Numbered from the stretch's first letter, positions 1,511 to 39,243 are shown. The stretch is DNA of 64,000 nucleotides from Lepidodermella squamata (GCA_047495785.1 JBLDXI010000013.1:3100001-3164000); one strand, 5' to 3'. The notes: generated from the sequence alone by a model not told the origin. Translations and numbers: made by a program.

Positions 1511-2536
1511 TCAGTTAAATTCAAATGTGCTCATAGACAAATTGGGAGAAATGTGGTCGTATTTGTCGAATAGTTTTTTCCCCTTGCCCTCTTCTGCAGC
1601 AGCCGCAGCCACATAAGCAGGTAGCAGGTGCTCAGTTCGAGGGTGAGCGATGTCTATAACGCTCAACTTCGTTAATTCCAGCAACCGCTTTTCCCTTTCT
1701 TCGCCAGTAAGGGTCGTCAAAGCTTCAGTGAGAAGCTGCTCGAATTCCAAGGCCCACCATTCGGTTTCGGTTGGTCGAACCGGAGGGGTCTCGCCGTGCA
1801 CTGAGCTGCCACTTCCAATGATCAGCACGCCTTCGTCTCTCAAAGGAGCTAGAGCCTTGCCAAGCTTCAGATGGAACTCAGGATCCAGTGAATCATTCAG
1901 TGATAGCTGAATTACCGGAACAGGCATTTCGGGAACCCTAAAAATTTAGATGTTAAAAGGCTCAAGAACATCGACAAATTCTTACATGATCTTCAGAGGT
2001 ATCCAGGTACCGTGGTCCAAACCCTATTAATCAATGAAATGTGGGTTGAACTAAACATTTTACTGAAATGTTGATTTACTCTTTCGGCGTCTATTCCGCA
2101 ATCAATCGATGCTGACTTGAGAAGCGCTTGAACCCTCGCTGCGAGTTGCGGATTTCCTTTACATGGGTACTGCTCAACGTACAAGTCGCTATCGTAACCA
2201 GTGAAGTCTGAAAGTTAAAATTACTAACAAATTATTTTTGTTGCTGTAATAATTGCTGCTTACCGTAAATTACACATGGATTCTCAATAGAATTGACTGT
2301 AGAAATAAAAAGGAAGTGACACTGGAATAATAGTTAGAGGAAAACAACTTACCCTCGACTTTCCCTTCGGATTCCCAATGAGCGGATACTACTAGAATAG
2401 ATTTCACGTGCCCTGGTGCCAGAAGTTCATCTTGCAGCCTTTTGCCGAAGGACTGCCAGAATTTGTATGTAGGCTTCTCATAGCTTCGCAAAATCCAAGG
2501 CGCGCCATGGGATACAAAGAATACTGGAAGCTTCAT
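1511..2536 (-). CDS. DODA-type extradiol ring-cleavage dioxygenase (LigB/YgiD, 4,5-DOPA dioxygenase family), 5 exons
   Basis: Spliced motifs FVSHGAP, VVSAHWES, IYDF, RGLDHGTWIPL, VIQLSL, LRDEGVLIIGSGSSVH, AHPRTEHLLP; short GT-AG introns. Confidence 0.9.
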
Positions 2537-2853
2537 CGCTTTATTTTGAACTGTAAAATGCTATACTCAGTAGGTTAAATTGCACACGATATGCCAAAGT
2601 CCTCGCTATTTATTAGGCTTAAAGAGGCCAAATTATATGATGCGGGCTCATTATCATTATGTAAATATCGTTCAAAGTTTAGCGATAAGATGTGTTACCG
2701 TGTTTTCCCTTCAAAAGCGGATATCTCAAATCGAAATTCACGAACTAAAGAGGGCAATTATTGCGTATATTAAGATGAATAAACTGTATAATGGCGTGAT
2801 GCGAAGTCACGGCGTGTTTTAATGAAGGTTCTGTCCAACACCATAGTCACGCT

Positions 2854-5631: not shown

Positions 5632-8082
5632 ATGACTAAGATCCGAAGGCTCTCGATTCTATACTTGACCTATATGATATTGAGTGACTCCCTAATGTTG
5701 GCTGAAGGCCGTAAACCTTACATGCTACGTCAAATAAGTATATCTACACTTGCCGGGATTGACGCTATTCAGATTCAAACGGGGATTCACTCTGCTCAGG
5801 TTGTCTTCGACAACATCAACAATAGAAGTGACATTCTAGCAGACTATCACCTGGAGATGGATTTGGTTGAAGATTTCTATGGCTTTCGAGCCGCGCAGCA
5901 ATTGGTTAACTATCGTCGCGATTGGAACGAATCACAGCCCAACCAGTATCAGTCGCCCATTGCAATAGGACCCCTCATTTCTACGGGTTGTAAAACAATA
6001 GGCCCGATTTTACAATACGTCCACACGGTTGGCTTGTCCACTTTCTGTTCGGCGCCCTTTTTTGCGGATCGAACCGAGTTTCCGAATATGTACTTGTCGC
6101 TTACCACTGGCAAAACCACTGCAGTGGCTATGTTGCATTTCATGAGAGAAGTCGGTAAGTGGAACAGATTTGCAATCTTCGCGCAATCAACCAGCATTTA
6201 CGACTACTCAATGGCGCTTTTTCTCAACGACAAAGCTATCGCCAACGGCTTTGAAATACCGTGGTTCAACACTTTTGTCGACATCAATATGGACGTCGTA
6301 ATGGATCTCAAACAATCAGGGGTGCGAATAATCGTCCTTACGTTGGTGACATCTCCTCTTGTAGCTAGCTTTCTATGCTTGGCTTTGAGGGCTGGAATGT
6401 CTGGGCCGCGTTATGTTTTCTTACTTTTGAACTCTCAATTTACGGTAACACCAGGTCCAAACTGTACAGTAGGAATGCTAGCCCAGCAATGGCGACAGGC
6501 CTATTTATTCGGGCCGATTCTCAAGCCACTTAATTACTCTTTGATGAGTGACTTAGGATACAACGCTGCTCAATTTGAGTTGGAAATGAGTCGACGCCTG
6601 AGTACTACAGCCGAAAATTTTCTCACAGCTTTCACTCTGCATGACGTCACATTGCGTGTCGTTATGGTTCTCAATGAGACTGAACGTCGTCTCCGGCAGT
6701 ACCATAATTTGTCTCTGAAAGATTATCATCGCTACCCAGACTTGGTAGCCAGGGTTGCGAATCAGTCAATGTTGGAAACAATAGTCAATGGACTCCGAAT
6801 CGGTCCGATGCGGTATGGACCTAGAGGACAGGTGCTAGGCGAAGTTGAGGCAGTCGCTAATTGGTCGCCATTCACTAGCCTAAGAAATCTTGCGTTGGTC
6901 CGCCAAATCCCAAGCAACAGCTCAGATGAATTTGACTACAACCGTTACACCCTTCAGCAAATCGGTCAAGTCGCATGGATAGGAGGAAAGCGTCCATTAG
7001 ACAGACCAACCGTGTTTAAGACTTTCCTCACATTTCCTACTACTTCATTCGGTGTTTGCTGGTTTTTGATAGTTATTACTTCGATTTCACAAATCGTGGG
7101 TCTAATTGCAATCAAGGTCAACAAAGCAATACCGACAGAATATCGGAAAACGAAAACTCTAGGTTTAGTAGGATGCCTGATTCTTAATGCATCGTCTGGA
7201 TCGTTCAGTCTCGACAGAATCGCTGGAGACTCATCTATCCCAGTGATCTCTATGGCTCTCGTTTGCGCAGGAAGTGCTTTGATCTTCGGTAGCTGGGCAA
7301 TGCGCATGGCTGTCGTTAAATTGTTTGTTTGGAAACGAATCGGGAAGGGATTTAGGCGTTCGAGAAATTCGTCCTTTACTATGTATGGTGCCAACGAAGG
7401 ATCTCAGATCGGCGGTCCTTTGCCGAACTCTTTGAGTATTCAAAGGAAGTCATCACTAGTCCCATCCCCGGCAAACTCTGTAGGTGGAGGGCAACCACTG
7501 GGACCACATTTTCCAAGTAACTCGAAACAGTTTGACAGGGATACGTTAGCCGCTACATTATCTTTTGTCGGCGTCCTCTACTCAATTCTGATCGGATGGC
7601 TGGCCAGTGAAGATATGGAGTGCTCCAATGAGTTGGTAACAGAACCTGTTTACACCGAATTGGAAGACAGCATAGAGGAAGCATGGTACGTCCGATGTGC
7701 TATGAGTTCTTCATACTCTCCTGTCGGATGGGCTCTTCTTGGCTCAATCGCCGGGCTTGAAATGCTAGTTCTATTAGTTTCACTCCTCTGGGCATTTCAA
7801 CTGAAGAAGATTAATGGAGTAGCTTCTAATTGCAAGGAGTTCTTCCCGAGTTGTCTTGGTGTTATCGCAAGTGGGACCCTGTTGCCAGCTGGTATTTTGA
7901 TTGCAGTAACGACTAATGGCAACCCGATTCAACAGCAAGGTTCAGTTGCTTTTGTGCTTGTTACCATTTCGGCTGTTGCAGCTATTCCATTGATTTATCC
8001 AAGTTTCTACGTTCCTAAACCAGAGCCTGTATCTACATTACGGCCAAGTGGAGGCCCTTTGCCGGTTTCACCACGCCATTAA
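5632..8082 (+). CDS. Intronless GABA-B-like class C GPCR (Venus-flytrap domain + 7TM), copy 1
   Basis: Signal peptide from ATG 5632; INNRSDILADYHL, IGPL.STGC, FPNMY, KWNRFAI, SGVRIIVL VFT motifs; W.GGKRP.D linker; hydrophobic helices; no Cys-rich domain. Confidence 0.85.
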   Translation: MTKIRRLSILYLTYMILSDSLMLAEGRKPYMLRQISISTLAGIDAIQIQTGIHSAQVVFDNINNRSDILADYHLEMDLVEDFYGFRAAQQLVNYRRDWNESQPNQYQSPIAIGPLISTGCKTIGPILQYVHTVGLSTFCSAPFFADRTEFPNMYLSLTTGKTTAVAMLHFMREVGKWNRFAIFAQSTSIYDYSMALFLNDKAIANGFEIPWFNTFVDINMDVVMDLKQSGVRIIVLTLVTSPLVASFLCLALRAGMSGPRYVFLLLNSQFTVTPGPNCTVGMLAQQWRQAYLFGPILKPLNYSLMSDLGYNAAQFELEMSRRLSTTAENFLTAFTLHDVTLRVVMVLNETERRLRQYHNLSLKDYHRYPDLVARVANQSMLETIVNGLRIGPMRYGPRGQVLGEVEAVANWSPFTSLRNLALVRQIPSNSSDEFDYNRYTLQQIGQVAWIGGKRPLDRPTVFKTFLTFPTTSFGVCWFLIVITSISQIVGLIAIKVNKAIPTEYRKTKTLGLVGCLILNASSGSFSLDRIAGDSSIPVISMALVCAGSALIFGSWAMRMAVVKLFVWKRIGKGFRRSRNSSFTMYGANEGSQIGGPLPNSLSIQRKSSLVPSPANSVGGGQPLGPHFPSNSKQFDRDTLAATLSFVGVLYSILIGWLASEDMECSNELVTEPVYTELEDSIEEAWYVRCAMSSSYSPVGWALLGSIAGLEMLVLLVSLLWAFQLKKINGVASNCKEFFPSCLGVIASGTLLPAGILIAVTTNGNPIQQQGSVAFVLVTISAVAAIPLIYPSFYVPKPEPVSTLRPSGGPLPVSPRH

Positions 8083-30647: not shown

Positions 30648-32773
30648 CTAGGAAATCGACCTTTCCGAGGCCGTTTCATTGACAGATTTCGGAACTTGGC
30701 CAAGTTTGTTTTTAGCACTCGTCAAACCAGGCTCGCGGCTCGTTAGAAATTTCATCATTTCTGAATCGCCGTTTTTCGTCGCAAAGTGTAGAACAGTGTT
30801 ACCTTCACTGTCCCGAGCTGACAGATTAGCGCCGAGCGACGTGAGAAATTCGACGGCTTTAAAATTCCCAGCACTCGCAGCTGTTAGAAGAGGAGTTCGG
30901 CCGAAATCGTCGCGAGCAGTCAGATCCAAATTGCTGTTTTTACTGATCAGAAAACCGAGAATTTCGGAATTTTTCAAAGCAGCAGCTCGATGAAGTGATG
31001 TTTGATTCTTGCCATCTCGGGTAGTGATAAGGTTCGAATCGGCTTCAGCCAAAATCTCAACCAATTTGAGGTCATCTTTACTCACCGAATAGTGAAAAAC
31101 ATTTTCCTGATCTTCGCTCTGAAGCTCCAACTTCGCGCCTTTTGCCGCTAAATATTTCACAGCTTCGTAGTGTGAACCAGTTGCTGCGATGAAGATGGGC
31201 GTTTTAAGCTGGAACCCTTGGCTGTTAATATCAGCGCCTCGTTTTTCGACCAAATACCGAATAACTTCGAGTTGGCCCATTTCAGCCGCGAAAAATAACG
31301 CCGTGCAATTCAACACGTTTTTCGATTCGAGAAGATCAGGCCGGATGTCGAGCATAACCTTAACAACCTCTAATCTGCCGTCATTCGCGGCCTGAAGGAA
31401 GGGCGAATAACCAGCGTGGGGCGTGTAACTGTAAAAAAGTTCAGCATCGCAATCTTTCATCAGAAATTCAACGATTTCTAAATGTGAGGATTCGGCGGCG
31501 ATTTGAAGCGGCTTTTTCACGCCTTGGTAGCTTTCGATTAGAGGTCTGATCGCGAAAGTATCGAATGGCGATGATTTCACGCGTGATCGGAACTCTTTAA
31601 TTATGCCTTTAACTTCGGTTAGGTTCCCATTTCTGACCGCCTCGTGAAAGCTAGGAGTGAGATCTTCGACCTTAACAAAAAATATTAGCAAAATTTAAAT
31701 TATTTAAATTTTAAATATTAAAATTTTTAATTTTTAAAATTAGGAAATATTCAAATATAATTTGGAAACTCACGGCTATTAGCGAGATCCAGCCAGTGCT
31801 GTTTTGCTTGGTTTCAGGAGGGTTCAAACCCCGGCCTTCGATAGCCCTAACAATTCCTGCCGTAGTCACCCCAACTCGGTAATTAAACTCCTCATTAATC
31901 GCATTATGAAAGCCAATCGCTTGATACGTTGCCGCATCCAACAACGGCGAGCCTGAGGTCCCCGGCTGTGATAAAATGTCATGGTATATCCAATCGTAGG
32001 CGCCTCTGTTCGGCAAAACTTTGCCAGACATGAACATGGCATCGGAGTAGAACTGCGAAAAACCGAATAGCAGAATATCGCGGCCAGTTTCGCGTTCAAT
32101 TAGTTGGAAATTGTCGTTGACTGCGATGAATTCGTAGTTTTTGCGCATGAGATCGGCGACGATTTTAGGGTGGAATTCGAAGAATGTAAAGTCGAGGTGC
32201 TCATCGGTGAACCAGCCAAGCGTGTCGACGTGAGTTTTCAGTGGGATTGAGTCGAAATGAGGTGTGGAATAAAAATTTGCGACCATATCAATCTTCGCCT
32301 CGGGAAACAGCAGATTTTTCGGAATAACTAAAATTAATTAAAATTAAAATAGGAATTTCAAGCCAATTTTTCGAAAATTGAATATTCCGTAATTTGATCG
32401 CAATTTTTTTCAAAAATTCTAGAAATTTACCATGGTTAGATGTTGAAAATCCGTAGTGGGTTCCAGTATGGCGGGCTCCATTCAGTTCCAATCTGCATAG
32501 AACTCCAGTAGCTATCGAGCCCGAAGATTTGTCTCGAAAATTGACGTCGAGTTGAAAGACTGACGTAGCAATTCTGCTGAGGTTTCGGTTCCAGAACTGG
32601 CGTTCAGCTTTAGCCTCAACCAAGACAGGTCGAGGATCAGCCATGAGGAAAACTACAACAACTACTAAGCTAAAATGTAAAACAAAGTTTTTAAGCATGT
32701 TTTTGATGGTATTTTGTGATGATAAAATGACGAGAAATAGTACGAAATTCACAAGAACGGATAAAATGGCCAC
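30648..32773 (-). CDS. Signal peptide + trypsin-like serine protease + ankyrin-repeat fusion protein, copy 1 (3 exons; alternative start 32698)
   Basis: Exons 32773..32431, 32327..31774, 31670..30648 splice in frame: TSNH|VIP (His), LDF (Asp), GTSGSP (Ser), WISLIA|VEDL then ~8 ankyrin repeats. Confidence 0.85.
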
Positions 32774-32881
32774 ATATTGCGCAAATATTGCCTCTTTGAT
32801 GTTGCATCAAGCATCGCTTCCCTTCAAATGAATGCGTCAAGTTTGATTATTAACATTCAGAATATCTTTTGCCGCAACTAG

Positions 32882-33141
32882 ATTTACGGTGAGTGGAACC
32901 TAATTTACTGTATGGAACCGAACTCGAACCGAACCAAAATATGCAAAGAATCACTCTTCGAAAAATTTTAAGAATTCTTACGCAGAATTTTACGCAGAAT
33001 TAAATTAAAAATTTTAGAATTATATTGGTGAGCCATGGCAACCTCGATTGTTCCGGAAAGTGGTTTTTAGGCCCATCAAAAATTCTAAAATTAGGTTCCG
33101 CTACATGCTACAGCAAATTTTAGGTTCCGCTCACCGTAAAT
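32882..33141. mobile_element. Putative MITE
   Basis: TIRs ATTTACGGTGAGTGGAACCTAA / TTAGGTTCCGCTCACCGTAAAT (1 mismatch in 22). Confidence 0.6.
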
Positions 33142-33702
33142 TTGGTTCCGATGAAATGAGGACCCATTAAAATTAATTGCCTATTTCTGAAGAGATAGGG
33201 TTGAGTAAGCCATACAACTTCGGTCAAGATGAAAGATTGAACAGCTCGGTCGAAAATCTATTTACTAACAACCCCATGGAGGAAAACGAAAAGCACGCGC
33301 TTGAACTTTAAATTGACACGAGTGAAATTTAAAATTTTTTCTCTAGAAATGAGATTTTGACGCCTTTGCACGATAGCCAAATAATTTATAGCATTATTCA
33401 GCTTATTATATTGCATTATTATTCTCGGCCTAAAAGCAACAATAGAATTTTACCAGAATTTTGCTCCGACTGGTCGTTTGTATCTCTTTCCTGCTACATT
33501 GGTGAGTGAGGCAATTGTTTCTAAGCTAAATTCTAATGTTTCTATTTGTTGTTGCTCAAGCCCTGAACAATAAAAGGCTAAAACAAACCGAAACTAGTTG
33601 ACAGTCGCGCAAGGCGTTAATTTCTTATTTTCAAGATGATCAATATCAATTAACCCGTCTGAAAAATCCAAAACAAGTTTATTTTCTCACATTAAGTTTA
33701 AA

Positions 33703-36666
33703 TCATCCTTCAAGGTTAGAAAGAAATTGTTCAATGTCAGTTGCTCCGTGTTTCTTAGCCGAATCCACCGGTGTCATTCCAGCCGAATTTTTCCTCACGA
33801 CCAAGACCGGGTTCGTCTCAACTAAATACTTGACCAAGTTCACATTTTTAACGAAAACTGCATGATGAAGCGCGTTGTTACCAGCTTTATCTACCGCGTT
33901 CAGATCCGCACCATGCGATGCCAAAATTTCAACGCTTTCCAAATTATTCGACGAGACAGCAGTTAATAAAGCCGTTCTACCTTGCCCGTCTTTCGCCTCC
34001 AGATTTTTCGCATTTTTATCGAGTAATAAATTTAAAATGTCCTTATTATTCAAACCAGCAGCGATGATAACCGGTGTCTTGCTGGACCCATCTAAGCTTG
34101 AGACCAAATCAGGATTAGCCTGAACAACAGCCTGAACAACATTTCCAAGACCTTTCGTAACCGCGACATGTAGAATGTTTTCGTTATTGTTGTTCTTCAC
34201 GTCAAGCTTCGCGCCTTTTTCGACGAAATATTTTAAAATTTCGAAATTTTCAATCGCCATGAAAGCTGGTGTCAGTCCATCAGCTCCTTGGCTGTTGATG
34301 TTAACCTTACGCTCTTCAACCAGGTATTTAATCACGTTCAGATGGCCGCCCTGAGTTGCGTAATGAATAGCAGTATTGCCGCTCTTATGTTTAGCCGCCA
34401 AAACTTCCGGCCGTAATTTCGCCATCATTTCGACAATTGCCAAATGTCCGTTTTTCGCTGCCTCGTGAAACGGCGAGTAGCCAGCGTTTGGAATTTCGCG
34501 TTGCATAACATCGGCATCACATTCGCGGATGAGATATTCAGCCACCTCGACGTGGCCGTGTTGAACAGCTTCGAATAGCGGCTTTTTCATGCGGTAGTGG
34601 TGGTTTTCAACGAGAGGTTTCAGGACGCTTCTATCGTATGGCGAAACGCCGACGCGTTGTTGCACGAGTTTGACAATGCTTTTAACAGCTTTCAGGTCAC
34701 CGGATCTGGAGGCATTGCGGAACTCTTCAGCAAGTTCGAATACCTGGAAAAATCATCCAAAATAAATATGTATATTTTTCGCGGATTTTTAAGTTAGCCA
34801 AACGGCTGACCTGGAGACCTCTCAATTTAGCGATTTATCGGTTGGATAATTCAGCGTGTCCAATAATTAACGCAAGCAAAGAAAATACACGGGAAAGAGT
34901 TCAGAAACTCTAAAATGAGAGACACATCTCTCGGCCAGATGTCTCTTGTTAGTGGGATTAAAGAATTCCGGAGAAAATGGGTAAAATACCGAAAATTACC
35001 GAATCAGTTACCATCGGCGTTTTCGGGGTTTTCGGGTCCCCCACAGAGTAGCAGGCTTCAAATAAAGCAGAGAGCAACAAATGGTGCACACTTCAGACCA
35101 AATGGCTTCAAAGCACTCCCATAAAAAAAGTAAAATAAAGTATTAAGCAATGATCACCATGTTTTGGAATTAATGCTATTATTTTACTTTGAAGCCATTT
35201 TTTAATTTTGCTTTGAGGTCATGGTGCTTTGAAGCCTGTTACTAAATTTTCCCTACTTTGTAGGGGACCCGTTTTCTCTGGTAAATTAATTTCTTCGGTT
35301 AAATCGCGGATGAAAAAGATTGAATTTTCCCTCAATTAAAAAGGTAGGTTTAATTGAAAAAGATTAGCTGAATTTCCTACAAAAAGTTGCCAAATTAAAA
35401 AATAGTTCTAGGACACGCTGTAAACATTTCAAATGCTATAGGCTATGGATGAAGCCAAGCTCGAACCATATTTCGGAGGATTTAGCACTCTAGAGTCTTA
35501 TTAGTGCTCGAACCCTGAGTTTAAAATGGCGCACTTGGTGCAATCGTGCTAAATTCTTGAATTTAAATGCCCCAAATTTATGGTAATTTCTTTGAAATAT
35601 AATTGAATTTTGAATCAATTCTTTAGGTAGCAGATTCGCTGCTGTATCAAATTCAATGCTCCAATAAATTTTGTGTTAAAATAAAAAATAATTCAACTTT
35701 AAAAAATTTCAAAATTTTGGAATTTAATCTTTCGATCTCAATTTTTCGTAATTTGAAGGTGTTACCACACTCCTAATATTCCAACATCAAAGAAGCTTAC
35801 GGCTAGTGCCAATTTCCAACCCGGGCTATTGGCTTTGCTCGCCGGGGCATACATTCCCATTTCCTCGGCTGCTCTGATGATCGCCGCACTCGAAACACCC
35901 AGACTACGGCCTGATGGGATCATAATCGCCTTATGAAACCCAATAACTTGATTCGTAACGTCATCAATCAACGGACCACCTGATGTGCCATCGAATGACG
36001 CGCAGCTGTGGTAGATATTGCCGAGAAAACCGTCTTCTTGATCAAGAATAATGCCGTTATCAACAATAGCCATCGAATAACGAGCTGGGTGACCGATCAA
36101 AGTTAACTGTCTGCCTTTTTGGAACTCAATATCTGGCCGAGCGTCTGTAACTGGGACAAAATAGAAGCCTTTCTTTACCAGCATTTGAACAATGTCAGGT
36201 TGAAGCTCGAAAAACGTTAAATCAAGCAGCTCATCGATAAACCAAGCCCGAGTATCGACATGCATCCTTATCGGGAAAAATTCCTCGGTGATTGTTGAGT
36301 AGAAATTGGCTTTCAAATTTGCCCCAGCTTCCGGGACAATCATCTTCAACGGAATCGCTGAAAATGTTGTTGAAAATGAAGGCCGGGATAATTATAACAA
36401 AAATTACCATGAGAGGAAGTCATGAAGCCGTAGTAAGTTCCGCTATGCCTCGCGCCATTCAGTTCAAAATAGCATAAAACACCTGTTGCTGATGATCCAC
36501 CCGCATTTTTCGGGTTTATATCTATCTGGAACAAGCTATTAGCAACCCGGGCTAGTTCCCGGTTCCAAAATTGCGGCTCCTTAACCGCCCGCAGTAATTT
36601 AGGGTGCTCACTACAATTCACCCATAATCCCGCGTAAAAAATTAAGATTAAAACTGTTTTAAACAT
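33703..36666 (-). CDS. Signal peptide + trypsin-like serine protease + ankyrin-repeat fusion protein, copy 2 (3 exons)
   Basis: Exons 36666..36408, 36357..35801, 34743..33703; TSSH|AIP, LDL, GTSGGP, WKLALA|VFEL, ankyrin repeats. Confidence 0.85.
35034..35270. mobile_element. Palindromic MITE with 6-bp target-site duplication in intron 2 of protease-ankyrin copy 2
   Basis: TIRs GGGTCCCCCACAGAGTAG / CTACTTTGTAGGGGACCC, nested inverted GGCTTCAAA motifs, GTTTTC on both flanks. Confidence 0.7.
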
Positions 36667-36798
36667 TTTTCAAAATAAAACCAGAAATGAGACGAAAAAT
36701 AAGTTGACGATCAAAGTAATTAGCATTCAAGTGCGAAATTAGGTCATCGTGTTTTGGTTTATTTAGACTAAAAGTTCGAATAAAGTACTAAAATGCGG

Positions 36799-39243
36799 CT
36801 ATTTTACTTCCTTTTCAAGTTTATTGAATAAACCCAGTACTTTTTTGGCGCCGCGACTTTCCGCCACCTCTTTCGGGTAGAAACCATCATTATTCCGCTC
36901 ACCAGCCATTCCCACCACCCGCTCGATTAGGAATTTCGCCAGAGTGGGGTTATCGAACCTAGCAGCGTAGTGCAAAGCGTTGTTGCCAGAATGGTCCCGA
37001 TCGTTCAAATCGCCGCCTTTCGAAGCCAGAAATTCAACCGCCTTGACATTTCCAGCAAAAGCCGCTGTTAATAGCGGCGTTCGACCGGAACTGTCACGCT
37101 TCGATAAACCAGCCGCATTTTCCGAGTTGAAATAAGCCAATAAACTCGTATCATTCAATGAAGCGGATCGATGGAAAACAGTTTGGTTTCGAGAATCAAG
37201 GCTATTTATCAAATTAGGCGAGGCTCGAAGGATTAAATCCACAATTTTTCGGTCATTATTACTCGCCGCAAAATGGAGAATATTTTCGCCGTCCGAACTT
37301 AGCGAGTCAAGTTTCGCGTTTTTCGAAATCAAATATTTAACTGGTTCGATGAGGAAACTACTCGCCGCCATGAAAATCGGGGTTCTTTGAGCGTAGCCTG
37401 GATTGTTGATATTTGCCTTTAACGTCTCAACTAGGTATTTAACGATTTTCATATGGCCAGCAACTGCGGCTAAATTCAGCGCTGTGTTATTGAAGTAATT
37501 TCTCGCCTCTAGCAACTCTGGTCTTAGTTCGACCATCAATTTAACGACTTCAAATTTTCCGGTATAGGCAGCTTCGTGGAATGGCGAATAGCCAGCATGT
37601 GGGTAGTCGCGGTAGAAAACATCGGCATTGCAATTTCGAATAAGGTAGTCAACAATATCGAGATAGCCGGCATCTGATGCGTCCATTAAAGGCTTTTTGA
37701 ACTTTTGATAGTGCTCAATTAGCGGTTTGATGACGGCAGTGTCGTAGGGCGAGGCTTTGGTCCGGCTTCGCAGGTCTTTAATTACGGTTTTGACCTTGGC
37801 AAGGTCACCGCTTTTTACTGCATCGTGAAATCTCGGCGACAACTCTTCGACCTAAAATTGGGAAAAAACCAAAATAAATTATTAAAAATTTCAATTTCAA
37901 TTTCAATTGAATTTTTAAATTTTTAAAATTATGAAACATTTTTTAATAATTTAATTTAAATTAAAAAAATAGATTATCGAAAATCTCACTGCTTTTGCCA
38001 ACATCCAACCATCACTTTCATTTTTAGAGGCAGGCGGGTACAATCCAAAGTCTTCAATTCTCTTCACAATCGCCGCTAAGCTGACCCCGATTCGGAAATT
38101 TGGAGCTATAGCTCGATGGAATCCAATGACCTGATAACTTTTCCTATCGAGTATAGGCGAGCCTGAAGTCCCGTCTTGCGACAAACAATTATGCAAAATA
38201 TTTCCAGGCAATCCACGATTTTCTAAAATTTGCCCTGACATGAACGTCGCATCAGAGTAGGACGAAGGATGGCCAAATAAGATGATCTCACGGCCGAGAT
38301 CGTATTCAATATCAGGATGGCTGTAGTTCACAGCTATGAATTCGAAGCGTCTACGCATCAACATTTGAACAATTGTTGGGTGTAGCTCGAAAAATGTAAA
38401 ATCAAGATGCTCGTCCGTGAACCAGCCAAGCGTGTCGATGTGCATGCGAATTTCGAAATGTTCGGGATTAGTTGCCGAGTAGAAATGAGCATTCATTCTA
38501 GCACCAGCCGCAGGGACAATGAACCTCATTGGGATGGCTAAAATAAATAAAAAATAAAATAAAAAATGAACCTTTCTTCACACCTAACTTGTATTCTAGC
38601 TTTTCATTTTTTTTTGATATTTCTCTCTCTAGTATTCTATTTTTCAAACTATGTCTGGTTTTTTACGAATTGACCAATTTGGACAAGTGCGTCAAAGCAT
38701 CACATCGTGTCACTAGGAAACAGGTGAAATTCTTAAATAATTTATAAGATGAGAATTTTGCTGAAAATTCATGGTTGGTGATTCGAAGTTTCTAGATATT
38801 ATATGACCACCTCATGCCAAAAATGTGTATTTTGAAAAAAATTAAAATAAAATTTCATTTAAAATACTTTAATTTAACATTTTTCAAAATTTAAAAGATA
38901 TTTCAGTTTAACATAGCTTGGCGATTTTTAACTAAATTTTTACGATAATGTAATAGCGCATGTCCCTCTTACCATGGTTCGATGACATGAAGCCATAATG
39001 CGTACCGCTATGAACTGCCCCAGCCAGTTCGACGTAGCATAAAACGCCCGTAGCCGAACTTCCAGGTTTATTCGTCGGTGTAACATCGAGTTGGAAAATA
39101 CTATTCGCAATCCTGGCCAAATGCCTGTTCCAGAACTGCAGCTGAGGTTTCGCTTCGATAGGAACAGGTATTTCCGGGTTCGGATTTTGCCATGATTTGG
39201 ACGCTGAGTTCGCCAATATAAGCAGATTAAGCAGGATAAACAT
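36799..39243 (-). CDS. Signal peptide + trypsin-like serine protease + ankyrin-repeat fusion protein, copy 3 (3 exons)
   Basis: Exons 39243..38973, 38537..37990, 37851..36799; SSNH|AIP, LDF, GTSGSP, WMLAKA|VEEL, ankyrin repeats. Confidence 0.85.

Follow-up and report, generated by a model that had tools for sequence, protein, structure and literature searches.

Three tandem genes of Lepidodermella squamata predicted to join a signal-like N-terminus, a Trypsin_2-type serine protease, and an ankyrin solenoid

Three paralogous genes at the locus

A stretch of 64,000 nucleotides (nt) from Lepidodermella squamata (GCA_047495785.1 JBLDXI010000013.1:3100001-3164000), referred to below as the window, contains three paralogous genes of three exons each. 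These genes, named A, B, and C, were read on the minus strand at 30648-39243, and all coordinates are 1-based positions in the window (Table 1). An initial annotation of the window had proposed three tandem protease/ankyrin genes with conserved splice junctions at this place, and the nine open reading frames (ORFs) found there do assemble into three such sets of three.

All six introns are of the GT..AG type and measure between 50 and 1057 nt, and their positions and phases are identical in the three genes. Exon 1 covers the hydrophobic N-terminus, then a linker in which the motif Q-F-W-N-R...A-x-S-x-F-Q is conserved, and finally the first protease strands up to S-[NS]-H. Intron 1 follows in phase 1, immediately 3' of the catalytic His codon in each gene. 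The remaining protease, with its LD[FL]TFFE and GTSG[SG]P motifs, is encoded by exon 2, which ends at a conserved Gly-Trp motif. Intron 2, in phase 0, separates this protease exon from exon 3, which holds the ankyrin repeats and the stop codon in all three cases. The junctions first suggested for intron 2 (31774/31670, 35801/34743, and 37990/37851) proved to be its exact canonical GT..AG sites.

Table 1. Positions of the genes and of other features in the window
Feature	Position	Strand	Details and basis
Gene A, whole	30648..32698	-	about 614 codons; DNA read, ORFs, Pfam
Gene A, exons	1: 32698-32431; 2: 32327-31774; 3: 31670-30648	-	first in-frame ATG at 32698; exon 3 includes the stop
Gene A, introns	1: 32430-32328; 2: 31773-31671	-	
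Gene B, whole	33703..36666	-	about 618 codons; DNA read, ORFs, Pfam
Gene B, exons	1: 36666-36408; 2: 36357-35801; 3: 34743-33703	-	exon 3 includes the stop
Gene B, introns	1: 36407-36358; 2: 35800-34744	-	50 nt; 1057 nt
Gene C, whole	36799..39243	-	about 623 codons; DNA read, ORFs, Pfam, alignments
Gene C, exons	1: 39243-38973; 2: 38537-37990; 3: 37851-36799	-	exon 3 includes the stop
Gene C, introns	1: 38972-38538; 2: 37989-37852	-	phase 1; phase 0
Signal-like N-terminus, gene C	39172..39243	-	core residues 2-11, then small-residue stretch ANSAS; Kyte-Doolittle
Catalytic His codon	C 38974..38976; B 36411-36409; A 32434-32432	-	last full codon of exon 1; alignments
Catalytic Asp codon	C 38401..38403; B 36223-36221; A 32193-32191	-	LDFTFFEL in C; invariant D45, exon-2 alignment
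Catalytic Ser codon	C 38164..38166; B 35983-35981; A 31956-31954	-	GTSGSP in C; invariant S124, exon-2 alignment
Ankyrin solenoid	C 36802..37851; B 33706-34743; A 30651-31670	-	Pfam; AlphaFold2 for gene C
AATAAA polyadenylation-type signals	C 36763-36758; B 33683-33678; A 30608-30603	-	DNA read; function putative
Nested MITE-like repeats, gene B intron 2	34847-35422	.	own-genome DNA search, inverted repeats

Pairwise identity among A, B, and C is 54-66% in exon 1, 44-55% in exon 2, and 40-47% in exon 3. The synonymous distance (dS) between the paralogs is saturated (at least 1.9 or not computable), and the nonsynonymous distance (dN) is 0.3-0.6. Despite the saturated dS, every ORF, splice site, and triad residue is intact in all three genes, which indicates long-term purifying selection on each of them. 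The duplication is old, and all copies have been kept intact.

A protease domain of the Trypsin_2 type

The catalytic His/Asp/Ser triad had already been described as intact. A, B, and C all keep its motifs S[NS]H, LD[FL]TFFE, and GTSG[SG]P, and the first, the last, and the LD[FL]TF part of the second also occur in P0001, a relative from metagenome sequences that is treated below. The His codon corresponds to the TNNH motif in the consensus of Trypsin_2 relatives, and the Ser motif aligns with GNSGGP of MucD/DegP when the exon-2 profile is compared with PDB sequences.

In searches run exon by exon, exon 2 matched Pfam Trypsin_2 (PF13365) at E values from 7.6e-8 to 9e-5. The scores of exon 2 alone were 33.6 bits in gene B, 24.1 in gene C, and 23.6 in gene A, beside 26.5 for the full domain of P0001 and a gathering score of 27.6. 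The Pfam scan found no PF00089 (Trypsin) and no Sushi match in any of the nine exon ORFs, nor a PDZ match in any exon, the C-terminal part being ankyrin. Weak matches to MucD/DegP, DegQ, Spl, and V8 were obtained with the exon-2 profile among PDB sequences (best E 0.009), and NCBIfam gave on the protease exons only sub-threshold matches to Do/DegQ/MamE, with TIGR02037 reaching 15.9 bits against a cutoff of 416.2 in gene B only.

The fold was examined by proxy on an AlphaFold2 model of P0001, for which the exon pieces of the window genes were supplied as separate alignment rows. This model has a predicted local distance difference test (pLDDT) score of 61 and a predicted template modeling (pTM) score of 0.61. 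Foldseek connected it with HtrA1, V8, Esp, MucD, MamO, and Spl at probability 1.0 and E of about 1e-8. At least 500 PDB matches were found at E 0.001 or lower, and all among the matches listed are chymotrypsin-fold serine proteases. The ESM Atlas likewise puts P0001 among Trypsin_2 clusters at 0.97. By way of this proxy the predicted fold class, the double beta-barrel chymotrypsin fold, is unambiguous. The PDB profile matches and the Foldseek results together place the enzyme with the HtrA/V8/Spl type and bear out the earlier view that it resembles HtrA/V8-type enzymes rather than classic trypsin.

The ankyrin solenoid

Pfam Ank_2, Ank_4, Ank, and Ank_3 were matched on exon 3 at E values from 1e-34 to 1e-63. 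The AlphaFold2 model of gene C exon 3 (pLDDT 93.9, pTM 0.86) shows ten helix pairs including the N- and C-caps, which replaces the figure of about eight repeats given at first.

An own-genome search with the ankyrin exon yielded 2277 first-look candidates in 121 megabases (Mb). Elsewhere in this genome, the exon-3 module and its F-H-x-A-x-x-x-G-D-L cap are found downstream of different N-terminal partners. At locus L029 the partner is a Sushi module, and this gene stands among the relatives of the window ankyrin exon; the partner at another locus (L026) is probably a kinase. Identical-scoring ankyrin matches were also observed on C28 and C33.

A metagenome relative and the joining of the two halves

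A three-row profile of exon 2 was searched against 1.84 billion representative proteins. P0001 was the single close relative, with E 3e-31 and as the only match below 1e-30, and the next real relatives appeared at about E 1e-10. JGI metagenome contigs were scanned twice, with an alignment of exon 2 and P0001 and with P0001 alone, and gave no relatives.

P0001 is a 285-residue ORF on metagenome scaffolds in ENA (loci L007, L034, and L035) and begins with a signal-like hydrophobic stretch. It is uninterrupted across the site of intron 1, and its residue there is Ala, the very amino acid that the codon split by this intron specifies in genes B and C; this validates the first junction. On L007, the ORF ends a few codons into an intron (GTAAGT...CAG) of about 50 nt at the place of intron 2 in the window, and this intron is followed in phase by an ankyrin ORF of 360 residues. 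The layout of the called genes on L034 is like that on L007. Judging from these scaffolds, the whole layout, together with its neighborhood, is conserved in a second, clearly diverged organism.

The L007 locus provides strong comparative evidence for the earlier proposal that one gene joins a signal-like peptide, a protease, and ankyrin repeats, and a one-polypeptide architecture is very likely for A, B, and C. The two halves might instead be made mainly as separate products, through intron-2 retention or alternative polyadenylation, in which case the apparent fusion would be an operon-like gene pair. In each of the three copies, a reading frame continued into intron 2 does reach a stop within 8-21 codons and would give a complete protein consisting of the protease alone. 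Exon 3, however, shows neither a start codon context nor a signal that would belong to it alone; it begins in phase at a canonical acceptor, whose position A, B, C, and L007 share. Furthermore, neither of the short introns in A and C was seen to contain a polyadenylation signal, and in the paralog L006, described below, a protease exon is likewise spliced to an ankyrin exon. Mainly separate products are considered quite improbable, and the joined polypeptide is preferred.

The initial annotation had called this architecture unusual. That description stands: ankyrin repeats occur in none of the 130 nearest Trypsin_2 relatives scanned, and literature searches found no paper that describes such a combination, only the general context of conflict systems. 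The known parts, a Trypsin_2/HtrA-like protease and ankyrin repeats, appear here in an architecture that is apparently undescribed.

Signal-like N-termini and export

The N-termini of A, B, C, and P0001 have hydrophobic cores of 10-14 residues that start at residues 2-9, with Kyte-Doolittle maxima of 2.6-3.7 over 9 residues. In gene C, the maximum is 3.03 at residue 2; the cores of the others span residues 4-16 in B, 9-20 in A, and 6-19 in P0001. Small or polar residues follow the core in all four, and the core sequences have diverged with their character kept. No C-terminal motif of the KDEL type is present in A, B, C, or the ankyrin ORF of P0001. Cores too short for a membrane span, in proteins without a KDEL-type end, form the pattern of a cleaved export signal.

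Cysteines are few, as was pointed out before, with 1-2 in the translation of exon 1, 0-1 in exon 2, and 1-2 in the ankyrin exon; in gene B, one cysteine of exon 1 lies within the signal-like N-terminus.

From these N-terminal features, the products of A, B, and C are probably exported. A competing explanation regards them as intracellular proteins, in which the hydrophobic stretch is not cleaved, or serves as a membrane tether with the bulk of the protein in the cytosol; they would then be protease effectors of innate immunity or cell death with ankyrin repeats as sensors. Ankyrin repeats are usually cytosolic, and the small number of cysteines agrees with such a location. The same genome also contains an active Trypsin_2-ankyrin gene that has no signal peptide and has a linker resembling a nuclear localization signal (NLS), as well as dead protease-ankyrin genes and a dead protease-TIR_2 gene, which are described in the next section. 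A precedent is found in trypsin-like peptidases with repeat, TIR, or death-like partners, which have been described as effectors of conflict systems (PMC8195603). Yet all four members of the clade, from two organisms, start at the first Met with a core of 10-14 residues whose character has been kept, and a stable membrane span would need a longer core. The paralogs that lack the core also lack an equivalent N-terminal exon sequence. An intracellular location is therefore rated as unlikely, and export remains the preferred reading.

Upstream of the first ATG of gene A (32699-32773), the same frame stays open for 25 codons and contains a second hydrophobic stretch, AILSVLVNFVLFLVIL. This stretch may be the relic of an older start/signal region or part of a 5' exon.

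Relatives in the same genome and origin of the family

Signal-bearing copies were found by the own-genome search only in A, B, and C. Several Trypsin_2 relatives without a signal peptide are present, and they are called active or dead here according to the triad residues read from the sequence (L004, L006, and L016 to L019). The active protease of L006/L010 (G000:C15:4642049-4645732; L006 ORFs 1186-2025 and 2061-2798) is encoded in an exon joined to an ankyrin exon of about 240 residues by a 52-nt intron of phase 2 (GTAAAT..TTAG). Its linker is basic and NLS-like (RKKRSRSR), and the gene is probably a cytosolic or nuclear paralog of the window genes. Another active protease gene encodes 534 residues (L017, G000:C30:859170-862622).

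The dead forms are of several kinds. In L018 (G000:C29:3349031-3352459) and L019 (G000:C46:167900-171463), His, Asp, and Ser have all been replaced, and ankyrin repeats follow the protease. L016 (G000:C61:128651-132028; ORFs 1462-2229 and 2201-2680, plus strand) keeps His and Asp in its protease, has lost Ser (NGPGLP), and continues with a TIR_2 domain (E 1.3e-15). L004 is a further dead protease. A kinase-like ORF on the opposite strand adjoins L016. The loci on C29 and C46 form near-identical pairs (L018/L019; also L025 and L030), and these pairs look like a recent segmental duplication or haplotigs.

A quick maximum-likelihood tree places A, B, C, and P0001 in one clade, with a Shimodaira-Hasegawa-like approximate likelihood ratio test (SH-aLRT) value of 88, and the remaining tree is unresolved. 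Given the signal-less paralogs in the genome, the exported form looks derived from an intracellular protease-ankyrin/TIR family. The simplest reading is that the signal-bearing branch arose from this Trypsin_2-ankyrin/TIR family by gain of a signal peptide. The domain make-up of the intracellular family is as described for immune/conflict systems (PMC8195603).

Beyond P0001, the nearest relatives (E 1e-10 to 1e-6), as far as they were read, are AT-rich proteins, putatively from protists, in which a Trypsin_2 protease is followed by a repeat or other module (DUF285/BspA leucine-rich repeats, WD40, or kinase). They share the TNNH, D-x-T-x-I-E, and GSSGSP motifs. They differ from the window genes in that many start with Met-Gly, those inspected have no signal peptide, and identity is only about 25%; by these features they are probably cytosolic.

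The initial annotation had also raised the possibility of a horizontal origin. Trypsin_2 is mainly a bacterial family, symbionts have ankyrin effectors, and among ESM Atlas clusters with recorded taxa the nearest ones are bacterial, all of which would agree with a recent transfer from bacteria of effector-like protease-ankyrin genes. Each gene, however, has two spliceosomal introns at conserved sites, several older signal-less paralogs are present in the same genome, and the base composition (GC content 39-43%) is like that of the flanks. Among the 1.84 billion representatives, P0001 excepted, no match was better than E 1e-10, and no bacterial match was better than E 1e-8; the remote matches that were read, AT-rich and eukaryotic in appearance, include no close bacterial donor. 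A recent bacterial origin was rejected on these grounds and is regarded as extremely improbable.

Comparison with known proteases and ankyrin proteins

The HtrA/DegP proteases (MEROPS S1C), such as human HTRA1, have the same chymotrypsin fold of the Trypsin_2 kind and gave the best structural matches as well as the best, if weak, sequence matches in the PDB. Their order is that of the window genes, the protease first and then a C-terminal protein-binding module, and HTRA1 carries a signal peptide. The binding module of HtrA/DegP is PDZ, whereas that of the window genes is an ankyrin solenoid, and the sequence similarity is marginal (E 0.009).

The staphylococcal V8, Esp, and Spl proteases (MEROPS S1B) are secreted, cysteine-poor, single-domain enzymes of the same fold and were among the top Foldseek matches, with a template modeling (TM) score of about 0.65 on the target. 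In contrast to the window genes, they are bacterial and without an ankyrin part, and their identity is only 15-20%. Activation in this group depends on the exact mature N-terminus.

FAM111A and FAM111B are eukaryotic proteases of the Trypsin_2 type. They belong to the same Pfam family as the window genes, but they are nuclear and have neither a signal peptide nor ankyrin repeats, and no FAM111 sequence appeared among the matches of checkable identity. The latrotoxins of widow spiders provide ankyrin repeats that work outside the producing cell. This likeness is an analogy only, as latrotoxins lack a protease domain, differ in the N-terminal region, and are unrelated in sequence to the window genes.

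Neighboring Cys-loop channel genes

The genes on both sides of the three copies are divergent Cys-loop channels on the same strand, so the embedding in a channel array was described correctly in the initial annotation. Cys-loop channel pieces also lie next to the P0001 gene on its scaffold L007, where they are convergent and not co-oriented; co-transcription is thus not a conserved feature. For the transmembrane part of the nearest L007 channel, the second, third, and seventh best genome matches fall inside the window (150 scored of about 1960 candidates). A roadblock/LC7 gene lies on L007 at 6751-7062, 4 kb away from the protease-ankyrin gene; the best match to it, with 83% identity, is at G000:C13:3309198-3309497, on the contig of the window itself and about 145 kb past the window end. 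This last match suggests loose conserved synteny between the two organisms, and the channel neighborhood is conserved in the second one.

A specific tie to the surrounding orphan channels might be proposed, in which the exported protease-ankyrin proteins process, cluster, or quality-control the channel ectodomains. Secreted scaffolds such as LEV-9 cluster the acetylcholine receptors of nematodes and need proteolytic processing themselves. The protease-ankyrin genes are on the same strand within the array and 130-220 nt from their neighbors, the neighborhood of the second organism has the same channel subfamily, and L017 lies between two Cys-loop channel genes, which makes it a second member of this protease superfamily within a channel array. 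Adjacency to such channels is cheap, however, since the transmembrane exon has about 1960 first-look candidates in the 121-Mb genome, on the order of a thousand or more gene pieces, and the channels of L007 are on the opposite strand. We consider this tie rather improbable.

A still bolder version, to which we would give even less credence, is that an intracellular immune-type protease-ankyrin module was turned into an exported protease that co-evolves with the neighboring, rapidly expanding orphan Cys-loop channels and acts on their ectodomains by processing, activating, or clearing them. If true, ankyrin repeats would serve as an extracellular targeting device, and ligand-gated channels would be under protease-based control.

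Proposed mode of action

In the explanation preferred here, that of an exported protease, each gene would be translated into one polypeptide of about 615-625 residues. From the N-terminus onward, it would comprise a cleavable signal peptide, a short linker, the protease, and, right after the Gly-Trp motif, a rigid solenoid of ten ankyrin repeats. The protease is predicted to be a catalytically competent serine endopeptidase of the PA clan and the Trypsin_2 kind, with a fold nearest to HtrA1, V8, Esp, and Spl. The protein would enter the secretory pathway and work outside the cell or in the lumen. The ankyrin array would act as a docking module that selects the targets of the protease, comparable to the PDZ domains in HtrA proteases, and the three diverged paralogs would cut or bind different partners. 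Taken as a whole, an exported, active protease guided by an ankyrin array within one polypeptide is somewhat favored over the other explanations combined; the role of the array in target selection, which is drawn from the analogy with HtrA, is tentative and falls short of an even chance.

Several points weigh against this explanation. Only exon 2 of gene B reaches the Trypsin_2 gathering score, those of A and C falling below it as exon fragments, and the protease model is modest in confidence and belongs to P0001, not to the protein of the window itself. That exon 2 is spliced to exon 3 is deduced from the conserved junctions, and a transcript that kept intron 2 would encode just the protease. 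The cytosol is the typical location of ankyrin repeats, and a signal peptide is missing from the closest paralogs in this genome. With 2-3 cysteines and no evident disulfide pattern, the mature proteins would be unusual among secreted proteins, although this does not disqualify them; V8 and Spl likewise contain few cysteines. The deeper branching of the tree is not resolved, so the gain of a signal peptide is an argument from parsimony.

The ankyrin repeat is the textbook intracellular binding scaffold. If the window proteins are exported, an array of ten repeats fused to an active protease would be akin to a naturally occurring protease guided by a designed ankyrin repeat protein (DARPin), and, as signal-less relatives persist in the genome, the family would offer a clean case for how an intracellular module is re-deployed extracellularly and for what proteins of this type cleave. 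If the proteins are intracellular, or if the two halves are separate, the genes would represent a lineage-specific paralog cluster of modest interest. The family is almost invisible to databases, with one relative cluster in 1.84 billion representatives, and its function would have to come from experiment.

Other features of the locus

Genes C and B are close together, with only 133 nt from the stop codon of the former to the ATG of the latter, and the polyadenylation-type signal of gene C lies 92 nt before this ATG. The spacer (36666-36799) contains an upstream ORF of two codons (ATG ACC TAA) starting at about 36746. An operon of C and B with trans-splicing was considered and rejected; no AG acceptor was seen in the stretch that runs from the polyadenylation-type signal of C to the start codon of B.

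Intron 2 of gene B owes its length to nested repeats that resemble miniature inverted-repeat transposable elements (MITEs) and lie outside the coding model. The inner element (35033-35271) measures 239 nt and has inverted ends of 19 nt, and the outer, older one (34847-35422) has inverted ends of 18 nt at 34852-34869 and 35403-35420. The own-genome DNA search found dozens of copies, those of the inner element being up to 98% identical.

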